The notes: generated by a model not told the origin, from the sequence alone. Numbered from the stretch's first letter, positions 9,001 through 50,600 are shown. The stretch is 64,000 bases of DNA from Stegostoma tigrinum (GCF_030684315.1 NC_081387.1:6242497-6306496), one strand, 5' to 3'. Numbers and translations are program-made.

Positions 9001-12000
9001 TTGACTTACTTTTTCTGCTTAAAGAGGCATTTCCAATTGAATAGTACGTCTTCCATAGATCTGGACAGTCATTTTCTAACAGGCTCTTGAAATAATGGTT
9101 CATCTTTGTTTCCTTATCCCATTTCTCTTTGAATTCTTTTGCAAACTTATCATGTATAATCCACACCAATGTATCTTTATCAAAACTGAGGATGTATCTG
9201 CCATCAAACGCAAACTTCAAAATCCCTTCATTCGGATCGGCATCATGCAGCTCACAGCCAAACAGTCCTTGCAGGTAATGGGTACCTAAACATTAATTCA
9301 GTCAATGAGCCCTTAAATATTCATTGCATCTGATCAAAACAAATCTGACAATTTTGGTTTATCATTTGATCCTTCATATCCAGCAGTACATTAAACAAGT
9401 GTACAAGCATTATTACACAGGATGATAGAAGTACAGCACAACAGCGAGAGCTTTAACAGTTGCCATCACAGACAGCCCAAGGGTACGGAAAGGCAGGAGA
9501 TGCAGGGAGGTGGGAGCGGGGGTTTGAGATGGAATTCGAGGATGGGGGTGGATGTAGCACTTGAAAGACAAGTGCAGTTAAAGCCACAACCAGCTCATTC
9601 ATAATCTCATTGATGGAGGAGCAGGACTGGTTCAATGGTTTCCTCCATGTATTACATTGCATAGTTGGGCTCAAAACTGCTGTCTGCAGTGATTTTCCTC
9701 TGCTAAATGAATGCATGCATTATGTTCAGTTCTTAATAGTGTTGCAACAATAGTTTTGGTAATCATACAATTGATACTTGGGAGAATTTTCTTAAAATAA
9801 TCCAGATTTTCACTGGTACTCTCAAGTGTCAGGCATGTCCCTTATTAATAATCAGCTGACCCTGGGAAATACCCAGTCTCTGATTTTATCTAATTTTATT
9901 AAACATTTGAATTCATCTATTTCTGTGAAAATACATTTGACTTCACAACTACAATACAGTGCCTCCTTCCAATTCGATCACTCCTCTGCAGCAAGTATTC
10001 TTGCTTAGTTTCTCAAACCACTTGCAGGATTATAAAAGAGCATCTGAGGTTTTCTTTAGGCCAGAGTCCCATATATCCATTTATTGTTTCAGGTGTAATG
10101 CTGCAATCTGCTGTCCATATTTCCCCGATGTTAAAATTAAAAAGTCTCCTGGTAGCTAAGTTCCAATTGAACTAAGTTGAAAAATCAGTGAGCACAATCA
10201 GACAGCCATGCACCCTATTCAGCGACAGTTTGAGTTGCAAATGTGAGGAGGAGGAGTGATAGTTTCTTTAGACTATTAATCCACAAGTGCAGCTAATGTT
10301 CTGGGTATGCAAGGCAGATGTTTGAGTTTGAATTCAACCAAAATATCAGGAAGTCACTGTCAATTCATGAAAAACCCACCTGTTCACTAACATTTTCAGG
10401 GAAGGAGATAAAACTCTCACCACCTGGTCTGGCCTACACGTGACTCCAGACCCACAGTAATGTGGTTGACCCTCAACAGCCCTCTGAAATGGCCCAGGAA
10501 GCCATTTGGGAGTAATCAATCACTATGAAGTCTCAACAAAGAAGACGGAGGTGCTAGGACAGGTGTTCAAGCTCCTGGCTCCTCTATTCACATGACCAAC
10601 TGCACCTTCTTGCAAAAATTTTCAATTTTCTTCGTTTGACTATTGAATCAAATTCATTTTGTTGGATGTGAGTTTGCTCGCTGAGCGGGAAGGTTAGTTT
10701 TCAGACGTTTCGTCATCTTTTTTATTTGAAAAAATATACTTTATTCATAGATGTACAAAATAATAAAACATTTCTGCACCTACCCAGTCATGCAGGCCGC
10801 TCCGGGTTACCCGGGGGTACGTACACCAACTAAAGGAAAAAAACAAAACAGAGAAAAAGAAACAAAAACAAAGAAAAAATTACCCTGGCAGTCGTCTCCC
10901 GCACAGTCCCCGTTGGCCCCCTGACCAATTGGGGAAGGCGCCAGCTGGGCCCAGTTACCAGATAGGATTCTTTTCCCTTTTCTGGACGAGGGGTTTCATA
11001 CGGTGGTCTTTCCCCACCACGCCTTGGCGGCGGCTGCCCCAAGCTTTAGCGCGTCCCTCAGCACGTAGTCCTGGACCTTGGAGTGCGCCAGTCTGCAACA
11101 CTCGGTCGGGGTCAGTTCTTTCAGCTGGAAGACCAGCAAGTTGCGGGCAGACCAAAGAGAGTCTTTCACCGCATTGATGGTCCTCCAGGCGCAGTTGATG
11201 TTGGTCTCGGTGTGCGTCCCGGGAAACAGCCAGTACAGCACGGAGTCCCACGTCACGGAGCTGCTCGGGACGAACCTTGACAAATACCACTGCATCCCCC
11301 TCCAGACCTCCTGCGCATAGGCACACTCCAGAAGGAGGTGATCGACAGTCTCGTCCCCCCCCCTGCAGCCGCCTCGAGGGCAGCGTGTGGTGGCGCAGAG
11401 TTTCCGGGCATGCATAAAGGATCTCATTGGCAGAGCCCCTCTCACCGCCAGCCAAGCAATGTCCTTGAGCTTGTTTGAAAGTTCTGGCGATGAGGCATTC
11501 TGCCAAACAACCTTGGCAGTCTGCGTGGGGAACCATACGACGGGATCCACCCTCTCCTTGTCCCAAAGGGTCTCAAGGATACTATGTGCTGACCACTGCC
11601 TGACGGCCTTGTGGTCAAAGGTGTTTCCTTTCAAAAATTTCTCCACGAAGGACAGGTGGTACGGGACGGTCCAACTACTCAGAGCGTTCCGCGGCAACGA
11701 GGCCAGGCCCATCCTTCGCAACACCGGGGACAGGTAGAACCTCAGTAAGTAGTGACACTTGGTGTTTGCGTACTGAGGATCTACGCACAGCTTGATGCAG
11801 CCGCACACAAAGGTAGCCAACAGGGCGAGGGTGGCATTCGGTACATCCTTCCCCCCATTTTCCAGGTCTTTGTACATGGTGTCCCTGTGGACCCGGTCCA
11901 TCCTCGACCCCCAAATGAAGTGGAAGATGGCCTGGGTGACCGCAGCGGAGCAGGTCCAGGGAATAGGCCAGGCCTGCGCCACATACAACAGTACCGAAAG

Positions 12001-15000
12001 GCCCATCGCACCTGACAACCAGGTTCTTACCCACGATGGAGAGGGACCGGAGCGACAACTGCCCAGCTTCTGCTTCAGTTTGGTGATACCCTCCTCCCAC
12101 ATCTTAGTGCATGCCCCAGCTTCACCGAACCAAACACCCAGCACCTTCAGGTAGTCTGTCCTGACGGTGAAGGGGATGAAGGAGCGGTCGTCCCTGTTCG
12201 CGAAGAACATGGCCTCGCTCTTACCCCTATTGACTTTGGCACCCGAGGCCAGTTCAAACTGGCCGCAGATGTCCAACAGCCTACTCACCGACCGACGATC
12301 AGTGCAGAAGACGGCGACGTTGTCCATGTACAGGGAGGTCTTGACCTGCAGGCCTCCGCTGCGTGGGATAGTCACGCCCTTCAGGCTCACGTCCTTCCTG
12401 ATGGATGTGGCGAAGGGCTCCATACAGCACACGAACAAGTCAGGAGAGAGCGGGCAGCCCTGCCTGACTCCAGATCTGACGGGAAAACTGTCCGATTCCC
12501 ACCCATTGATCGAGACTGCGCTAACGACGTTGGTGTAGACCAGCTGGATCCAATTGTGGATGCCCTCCCCGAATCCCAATTTGGAGATGACGTCCCTCAT
12601 GTAAGCATGAGAGACCCTGTCGAAGGCCTTCTCCTGGTCTAGGCTGACGAGGCAGGTGTCCACCCGCCTGTCCTGTACGTAGGCGATTGTATCCCTGATG
12701 AGCGCGAGGCTCTCAGTGATCTTCCTGCCCGGCACAGCACAGGTTTGGTCAGGGTGAATCACCGACTCCAGGACAGACCTGACCTGGTTGGCTCTGACCT
12801 TGGTCAGGATTTTGTCGTCCACATTCAAAAGTGAAGTGGGACGCCAATTCTTAATTTCTTCCCCCTCCCCCTTCCTCTTGTAAATGAGGGTGATGATGCC
12901 CTTCCTCATGGACTTGGACATTGCCCCTGCCCAAAGCGCACTATCGTACACCTCCAGCAGGTCCTGGCCGACCAGGTCCCAGAGTGCAGAATACAGCTCG
13001 ACCAGTAAGCCGTCACTCCCAGGAGTCTTATTCGTCTCCAAGGACTTGAGGGCTCTGGTCAGCTCATCCAGGGATATCGGCCGGTCCAGCCACTCCCTTG
13101 TGCTGTCATCTAAGAGCTCCGTGATAGACGACAGGGACGACTCAGAGGCCGTGCTGTCCCTGGGCTTCGCGTTGTACAGTCCAGCATAGAAGCATCTGCT
13201 GATCCTCAAAATGTCCGGCCGAGACGATGTCACCGAGCCGTCATCCTCCTTCAGCCAGCTAAGCACAGAGCTCTCTTTGTGCATCTTCTGAAAGAAGAAA
13301 CGCGAGCACGTCTCGTCCTGCTCCACGGAGCGGACCCTGGACCAGAAGATTATCCTGGAGGCCTCCGCGGCGAAGAGCGAGGCTTGCTGGCCCCTCACCT
13401 CGCAGAGGTCCTCCGTGACATCGACCCCCATCGACTGCAGAAGGAGCAGGTTCTGCATCCTTTTCTGGAGTCGCGACAGCTTTCCCCACCGCTCTCTCAC
13501 CTTCCAAACACCCTTGAGGACAAAGAACCTCTTGATGTTCTCCTTCACTGTCTCCCACCAGTCGCCCGGAGACTCAAAGAGGGGTTTCACGGTTCTCCAA
13601 TCAACGTACTCCCTCTTGGGCTCCTCGTTGTTCTCTGGGGTCAACAGAGTCGTGTTGAGCTTCCACGTTCCCTTGCCAGCCTGCTGGTCATCCTGTAAGT
13701 GACAGTCGGCCAGCAGGAGGCAGTGGTCAGAGAAGAACACCGGCTTGACACCGGTGGACCTGACCGAGAACGCCCGTGACACAAACAGGAAGTCTATCCT
13801 TAAGCAGATAGAACCGTCTGGCCGCGACCAGGTGTATCTCCGCTGCGCTCCGTCCTTCACCATGCCCATCAGGAATTTGGATGTGACGTCCAGTTGACTC
13901 CCCCCACCCGCTGTCCCCACGCCGGATCTTCCATTTGCATCGATGATGCAGTTGAAGTCTCCGCCTAGGATGGCCGGCCTGGACGTAGCCAGCAGGGGTG
14001 GAAGCCACTGCAGGACAGCCAACCATTTACTCCGTACCGCTGGGGTTTACACATTGATCAGCCTCAGGGGAGTGTTCCTGTAGGTAACATCAGCCACTAG
14101 GAGGCGCCCCCCACCACCTCCTGAACTTGAGAGATGGTGAAGTTGCGCCCCCGCAGCAGAATAGTCAGGCCCGAGGAGCGACAGTCGTTACCCCCCGACC
14201 AGATCGAAGGCCCACAGGTCCAGGCGCCCGACCATTTCCCGTACCTGCCGAGGTGCGGTATCCCGCACTCCTGCAGAAACAGGAGGCCCGCCTTGATGGT
14301 GGTCAGGTAGGCCAACGTGGATACACATCTTGCGGTGGACTTGACGCTGCGCACATTAATGCTCGCAACTCGTACCCCCATTGTGGGCAGTGACCGCAAT
14401 ACCCTTCCCAAGTCCAAGGTCCAGCCCCTCCATCTGTCCCTTCATGCCAATTGCCCGGGCTAACTGCTGGACGCACTCCGGGCTCAGGAATACGGAGGCA
14501 GGAGAGTCCGGCTCTGGGTCAGGCTGGGGACGCGCTGTTTTCTCCTTCCCACCTGAAGGTTGCGGGGGGCCCTCCAGGTCCCCAGTGGCACGTGGCTGGG
14601 TGTCAGAGGGAGCCGCAGGACGCCTCCCGTCACCTGGAAGCAGGGTGCTGCTTTCCTTCTCCATTGAGATCTTTAGCTTCTGCTTTGGGCGGGCCTCCTC
14701 CGAATCTCCCTCGTCAGAGGAGCTCTTATAGCCCCCCTGTAGCTGCCTCTTCCCGCCTGATGGTTGCGGTACCTGGGCCCACGGGTGCGCCTTCCTCCTC
14801 GCCTTCCGGACCATCGTCCACTCCCCTGGGTCACCTGTCACCTCCTCCATCGACTCCGGGTTGTCGGGGGGGAGCGGAGCCTGCAGGGGCGCTTTGCGGG
14901 CCTCGGGTCCCTCCTGCGGGGCTGGTCCCTCCTGCACGACCTAGACCTCCTGCACATTAGGGGGGTCCTTGCAGGGGCCTGGTGCCTTCCTTTCCTCCAG

Positions 15001-18000
15001 GGGGGGCTTGCCCCGCATTGCCCATGCCGGCAACCTGGGCGTAGGTGGTCCCCCGCCGCGGGCATGCCCTATAGAAGTGGCCCGCTTCCCCACAAAGGTT
15101 GCAGCTTTTCTCTTGTGGGCAATCCTTTGCAAGGTGACCCTCCTTCCTGCAGTTCCTGCAGATGGTTGCAGTCGGCCGCCACGTGACCTGACCTACCGCA
15201 GGCATGGCAGACTTTCGGTTGCCCTGCGTAGGTCAGGGAGCCCTTGCTCCCGCCGATCGCGAAGCTGGATGGTGGGTGTATGATGTTCCCATCCGCGCCC
15301 ATCCTCAGCATCACCCTGACCTGCCTCTTACTGGTCCAGATGCCAAAGGGGTCCATGATGTCAGTTAGGTCCCCTTCCACCTTCGCGTACCTTCCAAGGA
15401 AGGTCAGGACATCAACTGCTGGCACATGCAGGTTGTACATGTGTACAGTCACCATACGGCTCCTCTGCGCTGGCATCACAAACAGCGGGACAGCGGTCAA
15501 TATAGAGAGGGGGCCCTCACCTCCTTTCTCCTTGAAAACCTCCAGGAAGCGCTCGCAAAGCTTGGCACGCCTGAAGGTCACGTCGTAAAAACCTCCTCCG
15601 GGGAAATCCTGCAGGCAGTAAATGTCCGCAGCAGCGAACCCACAACAGTCCAACAGGACCCTCTTCACGAAGAAGGTGCGGTCCACAGGTGCACCTTCAT
15701 CCACCTTCTTCACGGAAACGCGGATGGTGTTCCGGACCCCCTGACCTGGGGCACGAGCACTCGCCGCAGCCATCGTTGCAGGTTGGCTGCTCCCCTGAAC
15801 CAGCGTTAGGCCGAAGCCAGCATTAAGATCCACCAGTTGCAAGGGTGCACAGCCAACCCGACGTCTTCTTTCCAGCTCCAACAGTCGTGCTCTCCTCTTC
15901 TCGGTCCACAAAAGAGTGGGTCTTTATTTTGTTCTGGATGTAAGCTGGTTCACTGAGCTGGAAGGTTTGTTCCCAGACGTTTCATCACCTTTTTTTTTTA
16001 TTTGAAAAAATATACTTTATTCGTAAGATGTACAAAAAATAAAACATATTTACACACCTACCCAGTCATGCAAGCCGCTCCGGGTTACCCAGGGGGTACA
16101 TACACCAACTAAAGGAAAAAAAAACAAAACAGAAAAAAAAACAAAGCAAAGAAAAATACCCCAGCAGTCGTCACCCCGCACAGCCCCAGTTGGCCCCCTG
16201 ACCAGTTGGGGAAGGCGCCAGCTGGGCCCAGTTACCAGATAGGATTCTTTTCCCTTTTCTGGACGAGGGGGCTCATACGGTGGTCTTTCCCCACCGCGCC
16301 TTGGCGGCGGCTGCCCCAAGCTTTAGCGCGTCCCTCAGCACGTAGCCCTGGACCTTGGAGTGCGCCAGTCTGCAACACTCGGTCGGGGTCAGTTCTTTCA
16401 GCTGGCAGACCAGCAAGTTGCGGGCAGACCAAAGAGCGTCTTTCACCGCATTGATGGTCCTCCAGGCGCAGTTGATGTTGGTCTCGGTGTGCGTCCCGGG
16501 AAACAGCCCGTAGAGCATGGAGTCCCGCGTCACGGAGCTGCTCGGGACGAACCTCGACAAATACCACTGCATCCCCCTCCAGACCTCCTGCGCATAGGCA
16601 CACTCCACAAGGAGGTGATCAACAGTCTCGTCCCCCCCGCAGCCACCTCGAGGGCAGCGTGCGGTGGTGCAGAGATTCCGGGCATGCATAAAGGATCTCA
16701 CTGGCAGAGCCCCTCTCACCGCCAGCCAAGCAATGTCCTTGTGCTTGTTTGAAAGTTCTGGCGATGAGGCATTCTGCCAAACGACTTTGGCAGTCTGCAT
16801 GGGGAACCACACGACGGGATCCACCCTCTCCTTTTCCCGAAGGGTCCTGAGGATACTACGTGCTGACCACTGCCTGACGGCCTTGTGGTCAAAGGTGTTT
16901 CCTTTCAAAAATTTCTCCACGAAGGACAGGTGGTACGGAACGGTCCAACTACTCGGAGCGTTCCGCGGCAACGAGGCCAGGCCCATCCTTCGCAACACCG
17001 GGGACAGGTAGAACCTCAGTAAGTAGTGACACTTGGTGTTTGCGTACTGAGGATCTACGCACAGCTTGATGCAGCCACACACAAAGGTAGCCGTCAGGGC
17101 GAGGGTGGCGTTCGGTACACCCTTTCCCCCATTTCCCAGGTCTTTGTACATGGTATCTCTGCGGACCCGGTCCATCCTCGACCCCCAAATGAAGTGGAAG
17201 ATGGCCCGGGTGACCGCAGCGGCGCAGGTCCAGGTAATAGGCCAGGCCTGCGCCACATACAACAGTACCGAAAGCCCCTCGCACCTGACAACCAGGTTCT
17301 TACCCGCGATGGAGAGGGACCGGAGCGTCCACCTGCCCAGCTTCTGCTTAAATTTGGAGATACGCTCCTCCCAAGTCTTAGTGCATGCCCCAGCTCCACC
17401 AAACCAAACACCCAGCACCTTCAGGTAGTCTGTCCTGACGGTGAAGGGGATGAAGGAGCGGTCGTCCCAGTTCCCGAAGAACATGACCTCGCTCTTACCC
17501 CTATTGACTTTGGCACCCGAGGCCAGTTCAAACTGGCCGCAGATGTCCAACAGCCTACTCACCGACCGACGATCGGTGCAGAAGACGGCGACATCATCCA
17601 TGTACAGGGAGGTCTTGACCTGCAGGCCTCCGCTGCCTGGGATAGTCACGCCCCTCAGGCTCACGTCCTTCCTGATGGAGGCGGCGAAGGGCTCCACACA
17701 GCACACGAACAAGGCAGGAGAGAGCGGGCAGCCCTGCCTGACTCCAGATCTAACAGGAAAACTGTCTGATTCCCACCCGTTGATCGAGACTGCGCTAACG
17801 ATGTTGGCGTAGAGCAGCCGGATCCAATTGCGGATGCCCTCCCCGAACCCCAATTTGGAGAGGACGTCCCTCATGTAAGCATGAGAGACCCTGTCGAAGG
17901 CCTTCTCCTGGTCCAGGCTGACGAGGCAGGTGTCCACCCGCCTGTCCTGTACGTAGGCGATCATATCCCTGATGAGCGCGAGGCTCTCAGCGATCTTCCT

Positions 18001-21000
18001 GCCCGGCACAGCACAGGTTTGGTCAGGGTGAATCACCGACTCCAGGACAGACCTGACCCGGTTGGCAATGACCTTGGCCAGGATTTTGTAGTCCACGTTC
18101 AAAAGTGAAATGGGACGCCAATTCTTAATTTCTTCCCTCTCCCCCTTCCTCTTGTAAATGAGGGTGATGATGCCCTTCCTCATGGACTTGCACATTTCCC
18201 CTGCCCGAAGCGCACTATCGTACACCTCCAGCAGGTCCTGGCCGACCAGGCCCCACAGAGCAGAATACAGCTCGACCGGTAAGCCATCACTTCCGGGAGT
18301 CCTATTCCTCTGCAAGGACTTGAGGGCTCTGGCCAGCTCGTCCAGGGATATCGGCCGGTCCAGCCACTCCCTCGTGCCGTCGTCTAAGACCTCCGTGATA
18401 GACGACAGGAACGACTCGGAGGCCGTGCTGTCCGTGGGCTTCGTGTCGTACAGTCCGGCAGAGAAGGATCTGCTGATCCTCAAAACGTCGGGCCGAGACG
18501 ACGTCACCGAGCCGTCGTCCTCCTTCAGCCGGCTAAGCACAGAGCTCTCTTTGTGCACCTTCTGAAAGAAGAAACGCGAGCACGTCTCGTCCTGCTCCAC
18601 GGAGCGGACCCTGGACCGGAAGATTATCCTGGAGGCCTCCACGGCGAAGAGCGAGGCTTGCTGGCCCCTCACCTCGCGGAGGTCCTCCGTGACATCGACC
18701 CCCATCAACTGCAGAAGGAGCAGGTTCTGCACCCTTTTCTGGACTCGCGACAGCTTTCCCCGCCTCTCTCTTACCTTCTGAACACCCTTGAGGACAAAGA
18801 ACCTCTTGATGTTCTCCTTCACCGTCTCCCACCAGTCGCCTGGAGACTCAAAGAGGGGTTTCACGGTTCTCCAACCGGTGTACTCCCTCTTAAGCTCCTC
18901 GACGTTCTCTGGGGTCAACAGAGTCGTGTTGAGCTTCCACGTCCCCTTGCCGGCCGGCTGGTCGTCCTCTAAGTGACAGTCGGCCAACAGGAGGCAGTGG
19001 TCAGAGAAGAACACCGGCTCGACACCAGTGGATCTGACCGAGAACGTCCGTGACACAAACAGGAAGTCTATCCTTGAGCGGATAGACCCGTCTGGCCGCG
19101 ACCAGGTGTACCTCTGCTGCGCTCCGTCTGCAGGGGTGCTGAAGACGTCGAGCAGCTTAGCGTCCTTCACCGTGCCCATCAGGAATCTGGACGTGACGTC
19201 CAGTTGAATCCCCCCACCCGCTGTCCCCACGCCGGATCTTCCATCTGCATCAATGATGCAGTTGAAGTCTCCGCCTAGGATGACCGGCCTGGACGTAGCC
19301 AGCAGGGGTGGAAGCCGCTGCAGGACGTCCAACCGCTCACTCCGTATCACTGGGGCGTACACGTTGATCAGCCTCAGGGGAGCATTCCTGTAGGTGATGT
19401 CAGCCACTAGGAGGCGCCCCCCCACCACCTCCTGAACTTGAGAGATGGTGAAGTTGCGCCCCCGCAGCAGAATAGCCAGGCCCGAGGAGCGACAGTCGTT
19501 ACCCCCCGACCAGATCGAAGGCCCACAGGTCCAGGCGCCGGACCATTTCCCGTACCTGCCGAGGTGCGGTATCCCGCACTCCTGCAGAAACAGGAGGTCC
19601 GCCTTGATGGTGGTCAGGTAGGCCAACGTGGACACACATCTCGCGGTTGACTTGACGCTGCGCACATTAATGCTCGCAATTCGTACCCCCATTGTGGGCA
19701 GTGACCGCAGTACCCTCCCCAGGTCCAAGGTCCAGCCCCTCCATCTGTCCCTTCATGCCCATTGCCCGGGCTAACTGCTGGACGCTCTCTGGGCTCAGGA
19801 AACCATCTGTGCTGCCTTCCGGGTGGCATCCCCCCGCCAGGGGTGCGGAGGCAGGAGGGTCCGGCTCCGGATCAGGCTGGGGACTTGCTGTTTCCTCCTT
19901 CCCGCCTGGAAGTTCCGGGGGGCCCTCCAGTGCTCCAGCGGCACTTGACTGGGTGTCGGAGTGAGCCTCAGGACGCCTCCCGTCACCTGGAAGCGGGGTG
20001 CTGCTTTCCTTCCCCCTCGAGACCTTTAACTTCTGCTTCGGGTGGGCCCTCTCCGAATCCTCCTCGTCAGAGGAGCTCTTATAGCCCCCCTGTAGCTGCC
20101 TCTTCCCTCCTGATTGTTGCGGTTCCTGGGCCCGTCGACGCACCTTCCTCCTCGCTTTCCGGACTGTAGTCCACTCCCCTGGGCTGCCTGCCGCCGCCTC
20201 CATTGGCTCCGGGTTGTCGGGGGGGATCGGAGCCTGCAGGGGTGCTTTGCTGGCCTCGGGCCCATCCTGCAGGGCTGGGCCCTCCTGCACGGCCTGGCCC
20301 TCCTGCACATTAGTGGGGTCCTTGCTGGGCCCTGGTGCCTTCTTCTCCTCCGGGGGGCTGGCCCCGCATTGCCCCTGCCGGCGACCTGGGCGTAGGTGGT
20401 ACCCCGCCGCGGGCATGCCCTATAGAAGTGGCCCGCTTCCCCGCAAAGGTTGCAGCTTCTCTCTCGTGGGCAATCCTTTGCAAGGTGTCCCTCCTTCCTG
20501 CAGTTCCTGCAGATGGTGGCTTTGCAGTCGGCCACCACGTGACCTGACCTACCACAGGCATGGCAGACTTTAGGTTGCCCTGCATAGGTCAGGTAGCCCC
20601 TGCTCCCGCCGATCGCGAAGCTGGACGGTGGGTGTGCGACATTCCCGTCTGCGCCCATCCTCAGCGTCACCTTGACCTGCCTCTTACTCGTCCAGATGCC
20701 AAAGGGGTCCACGATGTCAGTTAGGTCCGCTTCTACCTTCACGTACCTTCCGAGGAAGGTCAGGACATCAACTGCTGGCACATGCGGATTGTACATGTGT
20801 ACAGTCACCATACGGCTCCTCTGCGCTGGCATCACAAACAGCGGGACAGCGGTCAATACCGAGAGGGGGCCCTCACCTCCTTTCTCCTTGAAAACCTCCA
20901 GGAAGCGCTCGCAAAGCTTGGCACTCCGGAAGGTCACGTCGTAAAAACCCCCTCCGGGGAAATCCTGCAGGCAGTAAATGTCCGCAGCAGCAAACTCACA

Positions 21001-24000
21001 ACAGTCCAACAGGACCCTCTTCACGAAGAAGGTGCGGTCCACAGGTGCACCTTCATCCACCTTCTTTACAGAAACACGGATGGTGTTCCGGACCCCCTGA
21101 CCTGGGGCACGAGCACTTGCCGCAGCCATCGTTGCAGGTTGGCTGCTCCCCTGAACCAGCGTTAGGCCGAAGCCAGCATTAAGATCCACTGGTCGCAAGG
21201 GTGCACAGCCAACCCAACGTCCTCCTTTCACCTCCAAGACAGCACTCTCGTCCTCTCAGTCCACAAGAGAGTGGGTCTTTATTGTGTTTGAGATGTAAGC
21301 TAGTTCACTGAGCTGTGAGGTTTGTCCCCAGATGTTTTGTCACCATTCTAGGTAACATCAACAGTGAGCCTCCGATGAAGCGCTGGTGCTATGTCCCACT
21401 TTCTATTTATCTGTTTAGGTTTCCTTGGATTGGTGATGTCATTTCCTGCATTGGTGATGTCATTTCCTGTTCTTTTTCTCAGAGGATGGTAGGTTGGCTC
21501 CGAATCAATCAACACATTGTCAACACAATCAACATCAACAAACCTAAACAGATAAATAGAAAGCGGGACATAACACCAGCGCTTCTTCGTAGACTCACTG
21601 ATGACGTTACCTAGAATGGTGACGAAACGTCTGAAAACTAACCTTTGAGCTCAGCGAGCAAACTCACATCCAGAAACTCAACCTGAGCTACAAATCTTCT
21701 CAAAACTCACTCATTCATTTTGTCTTCTGTGTCTGGCTGTAGTGGTGAGGAGAGGTTGCGGATAGCTGCTGAGCAGCTGATCCAGCCCATTCCTCATGGC
21801 CATGGCAATTGTGGCTTGAGCAACTGTCGAACCCTTGATGGCTTGGGGTTAGTCCTTCTCCTTGGAGTTTCAGAGGCAGAGTGAACGATCGCTCAATCCT
21901 CAGGAGTTCACTTGGATGGTCCTTCGGTCCTTGGAAGTTGAGAATGGGCCCCAGTCCTCAAGAGTTGGGACAGCCTCCATGTCTGGTGGCAGGTGCAGTA
22001 TCGGTAGCCATGAGGCAGCTTTGGCAGAGGTGACATCCTGGGTCTGGTCGGCGACTGTGCACACTGCTTCAGCACGCTTCCTCCTCAGTGTTGCGGCCTC
22101 AGGGCCAACTTTGCTGGATGTTGAGTAAGGCATAACTCATAGCTACTTCTGAAATCAAGAATCCATGGTTGGAGCAAAAAGTGGAATTTTTCTTCACTTT
22201 GTTTGCATTGTTTCTCTTTTATAGTGTATACAATTAAGATAGTGCTGGATTAATGGTGGCAGCTTATACACATTTTCATGAACACATAACAATAAATTAC
22301 TGTAGTAACATAATAATAAAGAAATGCAACAGGCTGGAGCATCAACCTAAGGACCGGAAATGACAATGGCAAAAACAGACCTGTCAGCATTGCAAAGTCC
22401 TCGCTACTAAGTCGGGAGTTTGTGCTAAAATTGGGTCAGCTGTCTCTCACTAGTCATACTAGACATAGTCATACTCATGGAATCATACCTTTTAAACAAT
22501 GAAACCAACAACACCTCCATCATCCCTGGATAGGTACTTTCCCACCAGCAGGGCAGAGCCAGTAAAGATGACAGCACAGTGGTATACAGTCATATGCTCC
22601 TCCATGTTGAAAGCACCTGGAAGAATCAGAGGGTGGCAAGGGCACAGAATGCACTTGGGTGCCCGATTTCAATGTCCACCACCCACAGTGGCTCAGTAGT
22701 ACGACTACTGATCAAGCTGGTTGGGTCCGAAAGGACATCACTGTCAGACAGGGTCTATGGCATGGGGTAAGGCAACCAACAAAAAGGGAGAAACATATTT
22801 GATCTTATCCTTACCAATCTGCTAGCTGCAGGTGCATCTGTCCATGACAGTTCCAGAAAGAGTGACCGCCGTACAGTCCTCTTGGAGATAATGTCTCCCT
22901 TTCACGTTAATAATACACTCCATCATGTGGTGTGGCATGACAATCATGCAAATTGGGTCAGGTTTTGAATAGATTAAGTGACTCAAGACTGGGCTTCCGT
23001 GAGGCAGTGTGGGTAATCAACAGCAGCAGAACTGTGCTCCAAAACAGTCTGCAACCTCATGGCTTGCAATATCCCTCACTCGACTATAGTCACTAAGCCA
23101 GGGGTTACCTCTAGTTCAATGGAGAATGCAGGAAGGCATGCCAGGAGAAGCACCAGGCACACCTAAAAATGAGCTGTCAATGTGGTGACATTACCAAATA
23201 GTGCTACTTGCATGCCAAACAGCATAAGCTGATATCCACAGCTAAGCAGTCCCACACCAATTGATCAGATCTAAGATCTGCAGTCCTGCCACGTCCAGTT
23301 GCTCATGGTGGTAAACAATTAAATAACTGACTGGAGAAAGAAGGCACCAAAATATCCCATCCTCAGTGATGGGTAAGCCCAACATGCCAGTGCAAAAAGA
23401 TAAACTTGGAGCATTCACAACAGTATTTGACCAGAAGTTCCGAGTAGATCATACATCTTGGTCTCATCTGGTGGTTCCCATCGTTACAGATTTCAGTCTT
23501 CAGCCAATTTAATTCTCTCCAGGTGACACCAATAAATGGCTGGAGGCACTGGAAACTATTAAGACTCTCGGTCCTGACAACATTCTGAAATAATATTGGA
23601 GACTTGTGGCCCAGAGACTTGTGCTGCTCCCTTAGTCAAGCTGTCCCAGCATAGCTGCAACACTGGCATCCCCCTGACACTATGGAAAATTGCCCAGTAT
23701 GTCTTGTACACAAAAGCAGGACAAATCCAACGCAATCAATTCCCACCCCCATCAGTCTACCCTCAATCATTAGTAAATTGATGGAAGATGTCCTTGGGAG
23801 GGTTATCAAGCAGCACATGCTCAGCAATAATCTGCTTAGTGATGCCCAGTTTGCATTCCGCCAGGGCCACTTGGCTCCCAAAATCATTACAGCCTTGGCT
23901 GAAACATGGACAAAAGAGCTGAATTCCACAGGTGAGACTGACCGAGCGTGACATCAAGGATGTCTAGAACAATTGGAATCAGTGGGAAATCTCTTTGCTG

Positions 24001-34040: not shown

Positions 34041-34711
34041 GGGAGGTGGCTCAGATGAAATGTGGGACTGATTGACACAGCAGCCACTCCTGCTCGATGC
34101 CCTCAGGGAGATGGTGCGGACTGTCCCTCAGCTTTCACACCACGGGAGAGAAATATCATTCTCTGTCACTTCTGAACACAACCAAGGATATATTTCCCTC
34201 CACTCCCCTCCCTGCTTTCCGGGGGGACCGCTCTCTCTCCACTCCGCACCAGCACCACCGCCTCTCCCTGCAACCGCAGGAAGTGCTACTTCCCGAACGA
34301 GGGTCTCAGTTTCTTGTGGCTCTCGGCTTTGGTCCCCTCCCGGTGTGTTCACCGTTGACAGTCAATGTTTGATTAAGGACACCATCAAAATGTTCTTTTC
34401 TGGTTGCTTAGGATCTGTCCTTCCGATAGAGGATCAGTTACCTCATCCCCTTAAATCTAACAGGCATTGCCAGCTGCAGCCTGCTCCTCTCCCCGAGAGA
34501 TATCGTTCACGTGGCACTGTTGTGTTAAACATGCCCTCCAATCTGAGTAATACCATGCCACTTCTCTCCCACTGATGAAAAAGATCTGTTTGGAAGTGGC
34601 GATTGCAGTCCTGTATGAGGATCTCATCTGGAAAAGCGGAAACAATGTGAAAGTTCGCAATGACCATGAGAAAGTTCGCTTTGCCAAAAAATGAGGGAAG
34701 TTTTAACCAGA

Positions 34712-35000
34712 CAGGTTTTAACAGTGAGTGGGAGGGAGAGACGGAGTTAGGAGGGGAATGAAATGAGTCTGACAGATTTTAACAGAGTGGGAGGGAGAGA
34801 CGGGGTCAAGAGGGGAATGAAATGATTCTGACAGATTTTAACAGAGTGGGAGGGAGAGACGGGGTCAAGGGGGAATGAAATGATTCTGACAGATTTTAAC
34901 AGAGTGGGAGGGAGAGACGGGGTCAAGAGGGGAATGAAATGATTCTGACAGGTTTTAACAGTGAGTGGGAGGGAGAGACGGGGTCAAGAGGGGAATGAAG
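34712..35000. repeat. Minisatellite, ~5 copies of a 57-60 bp unit
   Basis: acagattttaacagagtgggagggagagacggggtcaagaggggaatgaaatgattctg repeated. Confidence 0.93.
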
Positions 35001-41630: not shown

Positions 41631-44600
41631 GGAAAGCACAAACCAGCCCTCAGGTTATCCTGAATTCCTCACTCCTGGTAATCCCTGGTTAGCAGTGTCC
41701 ATTTAATATTTCTCTTCAATTTATTCCAGGTTTCTGTTCCAGGTTAGTGATTGCATCGGTGTGACCCGGCCACTGTTTCAGGTCAGCGATCTTCTGTTTC
41801 CTCCTCCAGTCCCTGGATTGTGGCCCAGCCTCTCCCCTGTGTCCACACTGATTCCATTGAGTGTCTCTGTGACTCTGATTCCGTGTTTACTCCCTGTTCT
41901 GAGAGGCTGCAGTATCTAATTCTGACCCAGTTCAATCTGATTCTGTTCATAATATCTGACAGGAATCTGACAGTGTGATGAAGTGGTGGATTATTGCAGA
42001 TTGGCACCATATGGGAGGGGCCTCATGAGGATGAGCTGGAAGTGTGTGTAAATGTTCATTAGCCTGTACCTAATATTTGATTTACAGAGACAACATGTTT
42101 AAAGTTAGTCTCTCACATTAGTGACGCCCTTGGGATTTGTGATGTTGCCACGGTCGGTGAAGCCCAAATACATGAATATGATGTTTTTCATGCTGGGCTT
42201 CAGTTACCAGCTACTTTCAATGTTTGCTTTACAGAGACTAATGTGCACACTGGGATTTACACAGCGGTTTCTGGAATTCAAGACTTGCCTGAGGTGATGC
42301 ATATGGCAATGGTCAATGGAATTAAAATAAGTTCTGGTGACAGTAAAACCGGTCAGTGCATCCCGAGGCAGCAGTTCATGGTAGAATCTTTCAATGCGAA
42401 ATTCTGGGATTCTGTCACAAGCATGGTGCACCAATGTGCAAACACAGCAAAGGAAATTTTGAGTACAATAATGAAGAGGACAAGCCAGACATCTGGTAAG
42501 GTGTCAGAGATAATGGGAACTGCAGATGCTGGAGAAACCGAGATAACAAAGTGTGGAGCTGGATGAACACAGCAGGCCAACCAGCATCTCAGGAGCACAA
42601 AAGCTGACGTTTTGGGCCCAGATGCTTCATCAGAAATGGGGGCGAGGGAGAGCGTTCTGAAATAAATAGGGAGAGAGGGGGAGGCAGATAGAGGATGGAT
42701 AGAGGAGAAGATAGGTGGAGAGGAGATAGACAGGTTAAAGAGCAGGGGATGGAGCCTGGAGAGGTGAGTGCAGGTGGGGAGGTAGGGAGGGGATAGGGCA
42801 AGGGGGGTGAGATGAGATTAATAGGAAGGAAATGAGGGTGCGGCTTGAGGTGGGAGAAGGGGACAGGTGAGAGGAGGAACAGGTTAGGGAGGGGGGAACA
42901 AGCTAGGCTGGTCTTGGGATGCAGTAGGGGGAGGGGAGATTTTGAAACTTGTGAAATCCACCTTGATACCATTGGGCTGCAGGGTTCCCAAGCGGAATAT
43001 GAGTTGCTGTTTCTGCAACCTTTGGGTGGCATCATTGTGGCACTGCAGGAGGCAAGGATGGACATGTAAGCGGTTCCCAAGCCTCCGCTTGGTTTCCCCA
43101 ATGTAGAAGAGGCCACACCGTGTACAGCGGATGCAGTATACCACATTGGCAGATGTGCAGGTGAACCTCTGCTTAATATGGAAAGTCTTCTTGGGGCCTG
43201 GGATGGGGGTGAAGGGGGAGGTGTGGGGGCAGGTGTAGCACTTCCTGTGGTTGCAGGGGAAGGTGTCGGGTGTGGTGGGGTTGGCGGACAAGGGAGTCCC
43301 AGAGAGAATGGTCCCTCCGGAAGGCAGGTAAGGGTAGGGATGGAAAAGTGTCTTTGGTGGTGGGGTCCGATTGCAGATGGCGGAAGTGTCAGAGGATGAT
43401 GTGTTGGATCCGGAGGTTTGTAGGGTGGTATGTGAGGACAAGGGGTACACTCTTTTGGTTGTTATTGCGGGGACGGGGTGTGAGGGATGAATTGCGGGAA
43501 ATGCAAGGGACATGGACAAGGGCATTCTCGACCACTGTGGGGGGGCGGGGGGAGGTTGCAGTCCTTGAAAAGCAAGAGCATCTGAGATGTACGGGAGAGG
43601 AATGCCTCATCCTGGGAGCAGATGCGGCGGAGGCGAAGTAATTAGGAAGAGGGAATGGCATTTTTGCAGGAAGGTGGGTGGGAGGACGTGTATTCTAGGT
43701 AGTTGTGGGAGTCAGTGGGCTTTAAATGGAGGTCAGAGATAATGGGAACTGCAGATGCTGGAGAATCCAAGATAATAAAATGTGGGGCTGGATGAACACA
43801 GCAGGCCAAGCAGCATCTCAGGAGCACAAAAGCTGACGTTTCGGGCCTAGACCCTTCATCAGGGAGGGGTATGGGGAGATGATTCTGAAATAAATAGGGA
43901 GAGAGGGGGAGGCGGACTGAAGATGGATAGAGGAGAAGATAGGTCGAAAGGAGAGTATGGGTGGGAAGGTAGGGAGGAGATAGGTCAGTCTAGGGAAGAC
44001 GGACAGGTCAAGGTGGCGGGATGAGGTGGTAGGTAGGAAATGGAGGTGCGGCTTGAGGTGGGAGGAAGGGATGGGTGAGAGGAAGAACAGGTTAGGCAGG
44101 TTGGGACGAGCTGGACTGGTTTTGGGATGCAGTGTGGGGAGGGGAGATTTTGAAGCTGGTGAAATCCACATTGATGCCATTGGGCCGCAGTGCTCCAAGC
44201 GGAATATGAGTTGCTGTTCCTGCAACCTACGGGTGGCATCATTATGGCACTGCAGGTGGCCCAGGATGGACATGTCTTCTGAGGAATAGGAGGGGTAGTT
44301 GAAATGGCTCACGACTGGGAGATGCAGCTGTTTACTGTGAACTGAGCATCGGTGTTCTGGAAAGCGGTCCCCAAGCCTCCGCTTGGTTTCCCAAATGTAG
44401 AGGAAGCCACACCGTGTACAATGGATGCAGTATACCACATTGGCGGATGTGCAGGTGAACATCTGCTTGATATGGAAAGTCTTCTTGGGGCCTGGGATGG
44501 GGGTGAAGGGGGAGGTGTGGGGGCAGGTGTAGCACTTCCTGTGGTTGCAGGGGAAGGTGTCGGGTGTGGTGGGGTTGGCGGACAAGGGAGTCCCAGAGAG

Positions 44601-47600
44601 AATGGTCCCTCCGGAAGGCAGGTAAGGGTAGGGATGGAAAAGTGTCTTTGGTGGTGGGGTCCGATTGCAGATGGCGGAAGTGTCAGAGGATGATGTGTTG
44701 GATCCGGAGGTTTGTAGGGTGGTATGTGAGGACAAGGGGTACACTCTTTTGGTTGTTATTGCGGGGACGGGGTGTGAGGGATGAATTGCGGGAAATGCAA
44801 GGGACATGGACAAGGGCATTCTCGACCACTGTGGGGGGGCGGGGGGAGGTTGCAGTCCTTGAAAAGCAAGAGCATCTGAGATGTACGGGAGAGGAATGCC
44901 TCATCCTGGGAGCAGATGCGGCGGAGGCGAAGTAATTAGGAAGAGGGAATGGCATTTTTGCAGGAAGGTGGGTGGGAGGACGTGTATTCTAGGTAGTTGT
45001 GGGAGTCAGTGGGCTTTAAATGGAGGTCAGAGATAATGGGAACTGCAGATGCTGGAGAATCCAAGATAATAAAATGTGGGGCTGGATGAACACAGCAGGC
45101 CAAGCAGCATCTCAGGAGCACAAAAGCTGACGTTTCGGGCCTAGACCCTTCATCAGGGAGGGGTATGGGGAGATGATTCTGAAATAAATAGGGAGAGAGG
45201 GGGAGGCGGACTGAAGATGGATAGAGGAGAAGATAGGTCGAAAGGAGAGTATGGGTGGGAAGGTAGGGAGGAGATAGGTCAGTCTAGGGAAGACGGACAG
45301 GTCAAGGTGGCGGGATGAGGTGGTAGGTAGGAAATGGAGGTGCGGCTTGAGGTGGGAGGAAGGGATGGGTGAGAGGAAGAACAGGTTAGGCAGGTTGGGA
45401 CGAGCTGGACTGGTTTTGGGATGCAGTGTGGGGAGGGGAGATTTTGAAGCTGGTGAAATCCACATTGATGCCATTGGGCCGCAGTGCTCCAAGCGGAATA
45501 TGAGTTGCTGTTCCTGCAACCTACGGGTGGCATCATTATGGCACTGCAGGTGGCCCAGGATGGACATGTCTTCTGAGGAATAGGAGGGGTAGTTGAAATG
45601 GCTCACGACTGGGAGATGCAGCTGTTTACTGTGAACTGAGCATCGGTGTTCTGGAAAGCGGTCCCCAAGCCTCCGCTTGGTTTCCCAAATGTAGAGGAAG
45701 CCACACCGTGTACAATGGATGCAGTATACCACATTGGCGGATGTGCAGGTGAACATCTGCTTGATATGGAAAGTCTTCTTGGGGCCTGGGATGGGGGTGA
45801 AGGGGGAGGTGTGGGGGCAGGTGTAGCACTTCCTGTGGTTGCAGGGGAAGGTGTCGGGTGTGGTGGGGTTGGCGGACAAGGGAGTCCCAGAGAGAATGGT
45901 CCCTCCGGAAGGCAGGTAAGGGTAGGGATGGAAAAGTGTCTTTGGTGGTGGGGTCCGATTGCAGATGGCGGAAGTGTCAGAGGATGATGTGTTGGATCCG
46001 GAGGTTTGTAGGGTGGTATGTGAGGACAAGGGGTACACTCTTTTGGTTGTTATTGCGGGGACGGGGTGTGAGGGATGAATTGCGGGAAATGCAAGGGACA
46101 TGGACAAGGGCATTCTCGACCACTGTGGGGGGGCGGGGGGAGGTTGCAGTCCTTGAAAAGCAAGAGCATCTGAGATGTACGGGAGAGGAATGCCTCATCC
46201 TGGGAGCAGATGCGGCGGAGGCGAAGTAATTAGGAAGAGGGAATGGCATTTTTGCAGGAAGGTGGGTGGGAGGACGTGTATTCTAGGTAGTTGTGGGAGT
46301 CAGTGGGCTTTAAATGGAGGTCAGAGATAATGGGAACTGCAGATGCTGGAGAATCCAAGATAATAAAATGTGGGGCTGGATGAACACAGCAGGCCAAGCA
46401 GCATCTCAGGAGCACAAAAGCTGACGTTTCGGGCCTAGACCCTTCATCAGGGAGGGGTATGGGGAGATGATTCTGAAATAAATAGGGAGAGAGGGGGAGG
46501 CGGACTGAAGATGGATAGAGGAGAAGATAGGTCGAAAGGAGAGTATGGGTGGGAAGGTAGGGAGGAGATAGGTCAGTCTAGGGAAGACGGACAGGTCAAG
46601 GTGGCGGGATGAGGTGGTAGGTAGGAAATGGAGGTGCGGCTTGAGGTGGGAGGAAGGGATGGGTGAGAGGAAGAACAGGTTAGGCAGGTTGGGACGAGCT
46701 GGACTGGTTTTGGGATGCAGTGTGGGGAGGGGAGATTTTGAAGCTGGTGAAATCCACATTGATGCCATTGGGCCGCAGTGCTCCAAGCGGAATATGAGTT
46801 GCTGTTCCTGCAACCTACGGGTGGCATCATTATGGCACTGCAGGTGGCCCAGGATGGACATGTCTTCTGAGGAATAGGAGGGGTAGTTGAAATGGCTCAC
46901 GACTGGGAGATGCAGCTGTTTACTGTGAACTGAGCATCGGTGTTCTGGAAAGCGGTCCCCAAGCCTCCGCTTGGTTTCCCAAATGTAGAGGAAGCCACAC
47001 CGTGTACAATGGATGCAGTATACCACATTGGCGGATGTGCAGGTGAACATCTGCTTGATATGGAAGGTCATCTTGGGGCCTGGGATGGTGGTGAGGGAGG
47101 AGGTGTGGGGGCAAGTGTAATACATCCTGCGGTTGCAGGGGAAAGTGCCGGGTGTGGTGGGGTTGGCAGGGAGTGTGGAGTGGACAAGGGAGTCGTGGAG
47201 AGTGTGGTGTCTCCGGAAGGCAGACAAGCGTGGGGTGGGAAAAATGTCTTTGGTGGTGGGGTCGGATTGTAGATGGCGGAAGTGTCGGAGGATGATGCGT
47301 TGTATCCGGAGGTTGGTGGAGTGGTATGTGAGGACGATGGGGATTCTCTTCTGGCGGTTATTGCAGGGGCAGGGTGTGAGGGATGAGTTGCGGATAATGC
47401 GGGAGACACGGTCGAGGGCGTTCTCGACCACTGTGGAGGGAATGCTCTGGCCCTTGCAGAACGAGGACATCTGGGATGTGCGGGAGTGGAATGCCTCACC
47501 CTGGGAGCAGATGCAGTGGAGGTGAAGGAATTGGGAATAAGGGCTGGAATTTTTGCACGAAGGTGGGTGGACGGATGTGTATTCTAGGTAGCTGTGGGAG

Positions 47601-50600
47601 TCGGTGGGCTTGAAATGGACATCGGTTTGTAGGTGGTTGCCTGAGATGGAGAGGCCCAGGAAGGTGAGAGATGTGTTGGAGATGGTCCAGGTGAAATTGA
47701 GTTTCGGGTGGGAGGTGTTGGTGAGGTGGATGAACTGTTCGAGCTCCTCTTGGGAGCATGAGGCGGCACCGATACAGTCATCAAAGTAACGGAGGAAAAG
47801 GTGGAGTTTGGGGCCTGTGCAGGTGCAGAAGAGGGACTGTTCCACGTAACCTACAAAGAGGCAGGCATAGCTTGGGCCCATGCGGATACCCATGGTCACT
47901 CCCTTAGTCTGTAGGATGTGGGAGGAGTCGAAAGAGAAGTTGTTGAGGGTGATGACGAGTTCGGCTCGGCGGATGAGTGTGTCGGTGGAGGGGGACTGGT
48001 CGGGTCTGTGGGACAGGAAGAAGCGGAGGGCCTTGATGCCATCTGCATGAGGAATACAGGTGTATAGGGACTGGACGTCCATGGTGAAAATGAGGTATTG
48101 GAGACTGGGGAATTGGAAGTTTTGGAGGAGGTGGAGGGTGTGGATGCTGTCACGGACACAGCTAGGGAGTTCCTGGACCAAGGGGGAGAAAATGGAGTCG
48201 AGATAAGTGGAGATGAGGTCGGTGGGGCAGGAGCAGGCAGTGACAATGGTTCGAGAAGGGCAGTCAAGTTTGTGGATTTTGGGAAGGAGATAGAAGCGGG
48301 ACGTGCGGGATTGGGAACGATGAGTTTACAGGCTGTGGAAGGGAGGTCACCTGAGGCGATGGGGTTGTGGATGGTTTCGGAAGTACTGCTTTGGTGGCCA
48401 GGGATGAGGTCATGATCCGGGGGCAGTAGGAGGAAGCGTCGGAGAGCTGATACCTGACCTCAGCAATGTAGAGATCTGTGTGCCATTCTACAACTGCGCC
48501 TCTCTTGTCCGTGGGTTTTATGGTGAGGTTGGAATTGGAGCAGAGGGAGCGGAGGGCTGCATGTTCTGCCGGGGAGAGGCTGGAGTGGGTGAGAGGGGCG
48601 GAGAGGTTGAGTCAATTGATATCTTGACGGCACTTGGAGATGAAGAAGCCGAGGGAGGGTAGGAAGCCTTGGGGTGGTGTCCAGGAGGAGGGGGTGTGCT
48701 GGAGGCGGGTGAAGGGGTCAGCTGAGGGGTGGTCAGGCTCACGGTTAAAGAAGTAAGTGAGAGGGCAGAGGAGGCAGAAAAACTGTTCAACGTCTAAGCG
48801 TGAGTGGTATTCGTTGATGTGTGGGTGGGGGAGAACAAAGGTGAGCACCGTACTGAGGAATGACCGCTCGTCCTTAGCGAGAGGGAGATCTGAGGGGATG
48901 GTGAAAACTCGGCAGGGCTGGGTGCTACTGTCTCCAACCACATCTCATGTATGACATGTCAGGCAAAATTCGACCACAACCTTACACAGCCCAGGCCAAG
49001 AAAAATGCTTTTGTGTTTTGGCTTGAGTTTTCCTGAACCGCAACTAAACTCTTAATGGTAATTCATGTGCTCCCTACAGCACCTCCATTGTATAGAATGC
49101 CAGTAATAGAACATGATAAACTTTTGTCCATTTCTCATCCTCCTGATTACGTGATGGTCTCCATTTCCTCAATAAGGCATCATTTTTAAGATAGTAACGT
49201 TCAGAGATACACTCATATACTTTGGTGTATCTTTCCAATGCAGTTGCTTTGTGTTTTCCTCTTCCTCTTCTCATTCAGTTAATTGCTCTGAACTAAAAAT
49301 ACCGACTTTGTTCTCTACCTTTTCTTATTTTTCTCAACCATTTGATTGAACATGGTCTCTGACAATTGTATCTCAATTTTCTTATCTTTCTTCTTTGATC
49401 TCTCTTCCTGCTTCAACCTGTACCTTTGCGAACTAGTTATTACACAGTCAGGAAAAATTCCAGGATATATTACCCACAATACCCCAGTTCCCTACTTTCC
49501 ACTGGCTTTTCAACCGCAGTAGTATCAATCCCACCTGTAATTTAACTATTATTAGCAAGGACAAATTTTATTCTTGGAACTGAGAATTTCTCCAATTCCT
49601 TTCAACCACTTCCCCACACTTCACCAGACTCTCCAACCTCACTCGATATAATGGAACGTTTCTCTTCTCACCAAGAATTCCACTTATTACCACTTTTCCT
49701 GGCAATACTACTTCTGAATTATGTATCTCCTCATCACTCAACATCAAAGATCACTACGCTTCCCTATCTCTTAAAATTGTAGTTTCTTTACCTGCTCCTT
49801 CTGGCAAATATGAGTGAACCTTAACGTCGCAAGTAAATTCTTGAAGGAAATGTGGCACTTCCTCCTCGTCCAACTCCTGATCAGGTTGTACATTCTGTAG
49901 CAGCTTTTTAACTTCCGCTGTGCTTTCCCTTACGGCTTTAGCAAAATTCACTGGCTTGCCCTGTTTTCCCCATATCCATCTTCCCAGTGCTTTGTCTGAA
50001 CCACCACCACTGTGACTTCGTGTGGCCGAGTTTATTGCAGTGAGGTTTATTGCAGAGGGTTTTAATTTCTCTTTCCCTCTCATGGGTTCCCTTTTTACCC
50101 TGTGGTAAACTGTCTTTACTATCTTCAATGAGATTTCCATTTCGCTTACCACCCAAGGATTTCTCTTTTCCCCAATTTCTATCCCCCACAGATTGAAATT
50201 GATGTCAGAAGCCAAATTTGAATTATAAACCAACCCATAATCATCTGCCATTTCTGCTGCTAATCATGCTGTTTTAGCTCTGTGCTATACCACATGAGTT
50301 CTCACTATCTCATGAAGTGAATTTTTGACCTCCTCCAAAATAATTATCTCTCCAAGATTGTCATGTGTTTGACCTATTTTTATTGCCCTTATCCACCTAT
50401 CAAAATTACTTTGTTTGATCCTTTCAAACTCAATGTATATTTGACCAGGGTCCCTCCTGAGATCCCTGAAACATTACCAGTAGGCTTCTGGCTCTGATTC
50501 ATCTGCACACCTGGCTTTCTTCACCTCCTCCTACTCTTCAGGTACCTCCTCTGATAGTCATGCAAACACCTCACCAGCTCAAACTACAATTTTGTTTCGG

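Follow-up and report, generated by a model that had tools for sequence, protein, structure and literature searches.

Two head-to-tail copies of a Tx1-type long interspersed element (LINE) lie on the minus strand of a 64,000-nucleotide stretch of Stegostoma tigrinum DNA (GCF_030684315.1 NC_081387.1:6242497-6306496), the whole of which is called the window here, within the hammerhead ribozyme motif of a Penelope-like element (PLE). A 16-bp duplication, GGTGACGAAACGTCTG, is found three times: it flanks the array on both sides and also sits between the two LINE copies. The map was drawn by reading both strands and locating the repeated 16-mer, and was verified base by base; it describes one locus. 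The sequences quoted in a preliminary description of this DNA were all found where it had placed them. The features of the array and of its host are listed below, target-site duplications being abbreviated as TSDs, open reading frames as ORFs and reverse transcriptase as RT; the leader is the first 39 nt of each LINE copy.

21368-21345, minus strand: upstream half of the PLE motif, CTCA-CTGTTGA-TGTTACC-TAGAAT, made of the helix I 5' strand (CTCA), the box CTGTTGA (A6 mutated), the helix II 5' strand and loop II
21344-21329, minus strand: TSD1, GGTGACAAAACATCTG, in which two CpG decays abolish G12 and the C15.2-G16.2 pair
21328-15990, minus strand: LINE copy 2, 5339 bp, with its A-tail at 15999-15990
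21328-21290, minus strand: leader of copy 2, 39 nt, PLE-tail-like, 25/39 identical in register
From the ATG at 21129, minus strand: ORF1 of copy 2, with two ZCCHC3-type RNA-binding domains and CCHC knuckles
16273-19728, minus strand: ORF2 of copy 2, 1151 aa, with APE endonuclease, RT and zf-RVT
15989-15974, minus strand: TSD2, GGTGATGAAACGTCTG, the sole host sequence between the LINE copies, holding the 3' half of the hammerhead motif only
15973-10718, minus strand: LINE copy 1, 5256 bp, with a short A-tail at 10718-10723
15973-15935, minus strand: leader of copy 1, 39 nt, PLE-tail-like, 30/39 identical in register
15069-15911, minus strand: ORF1 region of copy 1
10996-14022, minus strand: ORF2 fragment of copy 1, 1008 aa
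10717-10702, minus strand: TSD3, GATGACGAAACGTCTG, the third copy of the duplication
10701-10663, minus strand: PLE tail of the interrupted (left) arm, AAAACTAACC...CACATCCA, the host continuation past the insertion site, 91% identical to 21615-21672
21369-21593, no strand assigned: inner part of the host inverted repeat, whose arms pair to 21422/21540 around a 117-nt centre
21594-21633, plus strand: intact minimal hammerhead of the uninterrupted arm, an empty target site, reading CTCA / CTGATGA / bulged C / GTTACC-TAGAAT-GGTGAC / GAAAC / GTC / TG, with the predicted cut between GTC and TG (21631/21632)
21634-21672, plus strand: PLE tail of the uninterrupted arm, the homology between the arms stopping at ...CACATCCA

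The short A-run at the 3' end of each LINE copy directly touches the 16-bp duplication. Five differences are seen among TSD1, TSD2 and TSD3; four are CpG-type transitions, and the fifth is a non-CpG G-to-A change in TSD3. Elsewhere in the 64-kb window, neither the LINE nor the host arm recurs.

The 1151-aa ORF2 matches the Exo_endo_phos (1.3e-16), RVT_1 (4.8e-39) and zf-RVT (7.3e-11) domains, and RBD_ZCCHC3_1st, RBD_ZCCHC3_2nd and zf-CCHC were matched in the ORF1 of both copies. The closest relatives of ORF2 are amphibian (Pleurodeles, Xenopus) and teleost (Takifugu, Coilia) proteins, with 36-48% identity and scores of 820-1010 bits, the human L1 ORF2p reaching 246 bits. Relatives of ORF1, at 59-67% identity, are mostly shark and ray proteins, which by itself points to a cartilaginous fish as the probable source. 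The target is also constant: the 16-bp TSD occurs three times in the window, and 15 public contigs from three runs join the A-tail straight to GGTGAC and the PLE tail, showing the 3' junction in its canonical form at further loci. By these sequence characters the element fits the Tx1 clade of the L1/Tx1 group. When checked for a CpG island as a sign of an internal promoter, the first 200 nt of the LINE proved no CpG-richer than the remainder, a result that is uninformative on such a promoter.

The host without its LINE copies forms a 383-bp inverted repeat, both arms of which are PLE 3' ends with a minimal hammerhead motif. Its inner part may be read as two 5'-truncated PLE 3' ends lying head to head. 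The core of the uninterrupted arm (21598-21631) is exact, with CUGAUGA ... GAAA and the GUC triplet, and it is accompanied by a bulged C, a 6-bp helix II (GUUACC/GGUGAC) and a palindromic ACGU with no helix III (GAAACGUC). Helix I has 3 bp with the PLE's own tail, and the two opposite-strand hammerhead boxes of the host are 234 bp apart. In the minimal hammerheads described in PLEs, a long helix II is preceded by a bulged base, helix III is missing, a palindromic ACGU is present, and helix I is short, typically 4-5 bp (2 bp in D. virilis); where such motifs come in pairs on opposite strands, the two lie 100-700 bp apart (Cervera & de la Pena, PMC4209133). PLE copies have also been described to terminate shortly past the hammerhead (PMC11167929), which fits the 39-nt host tail. 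The Rfam hammerhead families gave no match at the gathering score over the whole window, nor at E<=10 over 9500-23000; this is expected because helix III is absent, and we ascribe it to the models rather than count it against the motif.

Public contigs allow the motif of the host to be placed within its family. Their majority letters differ from the window at 21586, 21590 and 21593, and at no position inside the core among the rows shown; the motif of the intact arm is thus probably the usual form of the family. In 54 contigs (run X2), the PLE motif is followed to ...GTCTGAA (21634-21635 onward) and then gives way to another tail, with the consensus CGAAAACAAGCCAGCTCGGTGAGCAAGTCA, which indicates that PLE subfamilies with other tails exist.

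Directly after the duplication, the 39-nt leader aligns with the PLE tail, ungapped and in register, at 30 of the 39 positions in copy 1 and at 25 in copy 2; not one of 200,000 shuffles reached 30/39. The two host tails agree with each other at 36/39, and eight differences from both of them are common to both leaders. The homology ends where the two host arms cease to match, that is, at the PLE terminus. Since these eight differences are shared, and since the host tail after copy 1 is in the PLE state, the leader came with the LINE and does not stem from a long target duplication. The target-like 5' segment had indeed been attributed to the Tx1 element in the preliminary description, and the shared differences bear this out. 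The comparison supports the PLE sequence past the hammerhead cut site as the source of the leader. The alternative PLE tail consensus has some leader-type bases (…ACAA…, CAGCTC, GTGA), and the leader may descend from another PLE subfamily.

The opposite view, in which the leader is host sequence and the TSD a long one, was considered and rejected on the eight shared differences. In that case, the 39 nt would belong to the host, the LINE would start after ...ACATCC and the duplication would measure about 55 bp. The homology of the segment to the host, which stops at the PLE terminus, would be accounted for. However, the tail past copy 1 matches the sister arm at 36/39, while both upstream copies differ at eight common sites, transversions included, and three copies of one host stretch would not give such a pattern. 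Contigs from other loci also show the A-tail, then GGTGAC...GTCTG, then a PLE-type tail. This explanation is scarcely credible.

The PLE upstream half, the duplication and the leader together read CUCA / CUGNUGA / helix II / GAAAC / GUC / UGGG. Helix I has 4 bp with either leader, versus 3 bp with the PLE's own tail, so that the junction helix had rightly been judged as good as or better than that of the host. The junction copy at 21331-21364 is mutated in its core at A6, G12 and 16.2; the decayed core bases, CTGTTGA and AAAACATC, had already been named correctly. Ahead of copy 1, only the 16-nt 3' half of the motif is present, so no hammerhead is rebuilt there. The proposal that the 5' junction rebuilds a hammerhead is thus valid, in form, before copy 2 and does not extend to copy 1. 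The ribozyme does not lie at the element's own 5' end, as it does in R2: the whole core is in the host PLE upstream of the TSD, and the part of the LINE in the junction motif is the helix I 3' strand alone.

Nearest-neighbour folding predicts that the G-run of the leader is engaged in a 5-bp hairpin of its own. This hairpin involves the first ~17 nt of the LINE RNA and the TG of the duplication, on the minus strand (UGGGA/UUCCA in copy 1, 15957-15975; UGGGG/CCUCA in copy 2, 21310-21330), with unlike pairing registers in the two copies. A hammerhead-like fold with the leader is predicted to lie 6.6-7.5 kcal/mol above the minimum free energy (MFE), versus 5.7 for the PLE tail. In the MFE folds of monomers and homodimers, GAUG pairs with CGUC and the catalytic fold is absent even for the PLE itself. 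Folding thus cannot decide activity, and shows only an added competing hairpin.

Two runs from the same organism have 89,230 and 51,077 contigs that fall on the window. Three contigs join a copy-1-like leader and the TSD to the PLE upstream half. In two of these (run X2; joint 15978/21339), the core GTTTC (GAAAC in the element sense) is replaced by AATCA, which would be a junction variant devoid of the GAAA box, and the third (run X1) has the same joint with no replaced letters listed. As a whole, the contigs indicate a very abundant, site-specific LINE family. A metagenome scan for the 5' junction returned seven matches, all of them due to chance and outside any PLE or leader context, and scans of viral collections found nothing.

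In a related species (run X11, covering 15750-21700), many ORF2-like contigs were seen at 85-95% likeness. Almost nothing fell on ORF1, the 5' untranslated region or the PLE arms in that run, except one 125-nt piece (21164-21288, 97.6%), the alignment of which ends 2 nt before reaching the leader (21290). The RT may be spread over a broader lineage than the 5' part of the LINE and its target.

Copy 1 and copy 2 are 93.3% identical (6.7% divergence), with 351 differences, 115 of them CpG-type, and copy 1 is devoid of 42 and 36 bp present in copy 2. The host arms diverge by 6-10%. The ratio of nonsynonymous to synonymous substitution rates (dN/dS) between the copies is 0.51 for ORF2 and 0.27 for ORF1. 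Values below 1 were considered as evidence for independent insertions, and this argument was rejected on the codon-position control in ORF2, which is flat (67/53/72, p=0.22; non-CpG 34/33/36).

From these observations, a site-specific LINE of the L1/Tx1 group, aimed at the core of the PLE hammerhead and equipped with an inherited leader captured from the PLE tail, appears as the probable reading of the locus. Its endonuclease would nick the minimal hammerhead motif in its conserved 3' half, on the bottom strand between TAGAAT and GGTGAC, and on the top strand 16 bp further, 2 nt beyond the ribozyme scissile bond. Such a 16-bp nick stagger would lead to the 16-bp duplication. No stretch of this very abundant element is better conserved than the hammerhead core, and targets of this type are usual for site-specific LINEs, which would be a way to the same anatomy other than ribozyme processing. 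The heritable 39-nt leader would be a diverged copy of the last ~40 nt of the PLE, beginning at the cut site and ending with the PLE 3' terminus. An ancestor would have taken it once, the LINE body being fused to the PLE end through read-through or template switching, and it would have been copied since. Because the leader is in register with the target, each new 5' junction would read as an uninterrupted PLE, with a complete minimal hammerhead and a target-like site, and arrays could form by repeated insertion into this regenerated site.

Several points weigh against this interpretation. We infer four steps, namely that the leader is inherited throughout the family, that a founder event took place, that insertions were sequential and that transcription reads through from the PLE promoter; for the founder event and the read-through this counts as a weakness. 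The clade placement is drawn from domain content and protein similarity. The family-wide presence of the leader is drawn from the three joint contigs, and the base-by-base reading from one locus. The two copies may represent one insertion later duplicated, or two near-simultaneous insertions. We also infer the host label, PLE, from the architecture and arrangement of the motif; no PLE RT ORF adjoins the host fragment, and the window holds no full-length PLE of the host subfamily.

How the 5' end of the LINE RNA is made can be envisaged in several ways. An uncleaved read-through RNA, the PLE part of which would anneal to the target and prime the second strand, is tentatively put forward, although it falls short of being probable. 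In a transcript started in the PLE, the PLE part of the cDNA would anneal to the 16-nt target overhang and prime second-strand synthesis, which would give a precise, in-register junction with donor-type sequence beginning at the nick. R2 elements whose cleavage falls upstream of the junction have been proposed to use such annealing and second-strand priming (PMC3774820). An internal start at the leader is conceivable but rather unlikely, hammerhead cleavage is doubtful, and some other route has a small probability.

Hammerhead cleavage would be part of a wider scheme, in which read-through from the PLE promoter is followed by a cut after GUC by the PLE hammerhead, with the leader supplying its helix I 3' strand, the RNA starting with UG + GG(A/G)AC, and in which both site and leader have been selected for this. 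The top-strand nick falls 2 nt past the scissile bond and the TG can be assigned to the TSD or to the element, so the DNA 5' end is compatible with an RNA starting exactly at the cut. The 16-bp stagger keeps the entire catalytic core upstream of the LINE, and the product downstream of a type I hammerhead retains next to nothing of the ribozyme. Promoters have been reported within the pLTRs of PLEs (PMC6765202), and ribozyme-processed LINE co-transcripts are known in R2 and L1Tc (PMC3774820, PMC6765202). The passage of helix I from 3 to 4 bp brings it into the 4-5 bp range of PLE minimal hammerheads (PMC4209133), but mismatches appear from position 1.5 onward when the leader is paired with GGCUCA, the majority PLE strand, and the helix falls short of optimal. 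At this locus, the junction core is dead (A6, G12 and the 15.2-16.2 pair being mutated), and with no CUGAUGA box upstream of copy 1, processing would be restricted to the first copy of an array. The first bases of the leader are predicted to pair inside the leader, which makes the hammerhead-like fold costlier. PLE minimal hammerheads are also slow in vitro and need a second copy (PMC4209133, PMC6765202), and the second motif is here on the opposite strand; in the Anolis PAc element, the hammerhead site comes without mapped RNA ends (PMC11167929). The scheme is considered a live but unlikely reading. The preliminary description had proposed that the borrowed ribozyme defines the Tx1 RNA 5' end: the hammerhead form and the 4-bp helix I agree with this, while the decayed core, the competing hairpin and the incomplete motif before copy 1 speak against it. 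The full picture of a LINE parasitising Penelope, which would insert 2 nt past the scissile bond, borrow promoter and ribozyme for its RNA 5' end, and use the leader both for helix I and for regenerating the target, is a shade more doubtful still.

The leader could instead have been kept to preserve the sequence that the endonuclease needs past the nicks, so that the 5' junction stays a target and arrays grow upstream. Its in-register position, with 64-77% identity to the target, and the tandem pair at the locus are consistent with this. So is the better state of the upstream copy 2, with longer intact ORFs (1151 versus 1008 aa) and none of the 36- and 42-bp gaps, as for a later insertion at the leader junction. 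The array would, however, look alike if the TSD and one flank only were recognised, and the leader bases beside the nick (1-3) are precisely those unlike the target. SINEU-3, which Tx1-type LINEs mobilise, forms tandems around a 16-bp TSD, and its head, of U2 origin, does not resemble the target (PMC4494074). Target regeneration had earlier been held to explain array growth; the in-register leader and the tandem pair are retained in its favour, and the SINEU-3 arrays show that a target-like head is not required for arrays to form. Selection of the leader as a target mimic is seen as a possibility, on the unlikely side. A local event is yet another explanation: a single LINE with an odd 5' end would have undergone tandem duplication, by unequal exchange between TSDs or by retrotransposition of a dimeric read-through RNA, and the leader would be uninformative for the family. 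The differences between the copies do look neutral (flat ORF2 codon positions; 115/351 CpG-type), and the 6.7% divergence of the pair is similar to the 6-10% of the host arms. However, copy 1 of this locus cannot be the source of the contigs in which a copy-1-like leader is joined to the upstream half of the PLE motif. Nor could a donor at the canonical site pass on a tail-like leader by simple 5' transduction, which makes a one-off origin unlikely, and the local event as a whole is improbable.

The preferred reading, a site-specific LINE with an inherited leader, can be set against known systems. Targets in the Tx1 clade include the piggyBac-type Tx1D for Tx1L, U2 small nuclear RNA genes for Keno, Mariner-N4_AMi for Tx1-Mar, and Harbinger and long terminal repeat elements for others (Kojima 2015, PMC4494074). 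The present element resembles these LINEs in being of the APE type, in using one defined site in a multicopy sequence, often another transposon, in its 16-bp TSD (reported for the Mariner target) and in its tandem insertions sandwiching the TSD (PMC4494074). As in some Tx1 families, sequence has been captured at the 5' end, theirs being U1/U2 heads (PMC4494074). Unlike in the members of the clade described in the papers searched, the target is the catalytic core of a PLE hammerhead, and the captured head corresponds to the stretch of the target element that follows directly on the insertion site, in register, so that the 5' junction mimics an uninterrupted target. A literature search for Tx1 elements with hammerhead or Penelope targets, which covered sources other than Repbase Reports, gave nothing relevant, and this anatomy seems undescribed.

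The likeness to R2, and to L1Tc, RTE and Baggins, which have ribozymes resembling that of hepatitis delta virus (HDV), is of another kind (PMC3774820, PMC6765202). The LINE is site-specific, has no evident promoter of its own and would lie downstream of a host transcription unit. A self-cleaving-ribozyme motif spans or adjoins the 5' junction, and the cut position would be expected to govern the uniformity of that junction. In contrast, R2 encodes an HDV-like ribozyme at its own 5' end, whereas the catalytic core here belongs to the host PLE and the LINE supplies only 2-6 nt of helix I. Cleavage has been demonstrated for R2; the hammerhead discussed here is known from its sequence. Compared with PLE minimal hammerheads, as described (PMC4209133; Lunse et al. 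2017 via PMC6765202), the host motif shares the CUGAUGA and GAAA boxes, the bulge before a helix II of 6-8 bp, the lack of helix III, the palindromic ACGU, the short helix I and the opposite-strand pairs a few hundred bp apart. It differs by a helix I of only 3 bp, by the lack of an adjoining PLE RT ORF and by the absence of any score with the Rfam models.

A second, different Penelope-like element lies further along the window (42589-48181, minus strand). It has a 591-aa ORF with a weak RVT_1 match (46406-48181), followed by tandem units of 1294 bp, each of which carries CTGATGA-A-GGGTCTAGGCCC-GAAAC-GTC. Three of these units are identical in ~200 nt around the motif, and two have ORFs of equal length (333 aa). 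A fourth unit (42603-42633) is decayed, and the region has a strongly positive GC skew. Two tandem repeats complete the list of other features:

34710-34999: 59/117-bp tandem repeat, 4.9 copies, 94% matches
61207-64000: 61-bp satellite, 45.8 copies, 87% matches, continuing past the end of the window

Work on how retrotransposons find safe sites uses target-specific LINEs as models, and these LINEs are under development as programmable insertion tools. A LINE lineage aimed at the most conserved 16 bp of the ribozyme of another retroelement would be a new target class. Hammerhead targeting would also be a clear case of a transposon parasitising a transposon, to which the in-register copy of the sequence past the cut adds. 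It would offer a natural test of in vivo cleavage by the enigmatic PLE minimal hammerheads: if such cleavage is true, its trace should be found at thousands of 5' ends of the LINE across this genome. Should the LINE indeed borrow the Penelope ribozyme, it would be the first LINE processed by the ribozyme of another transposon. Should the ribozyme reading prove wrong, the leader remains informative on the formation of 5' junctions in site-specific LINEs.

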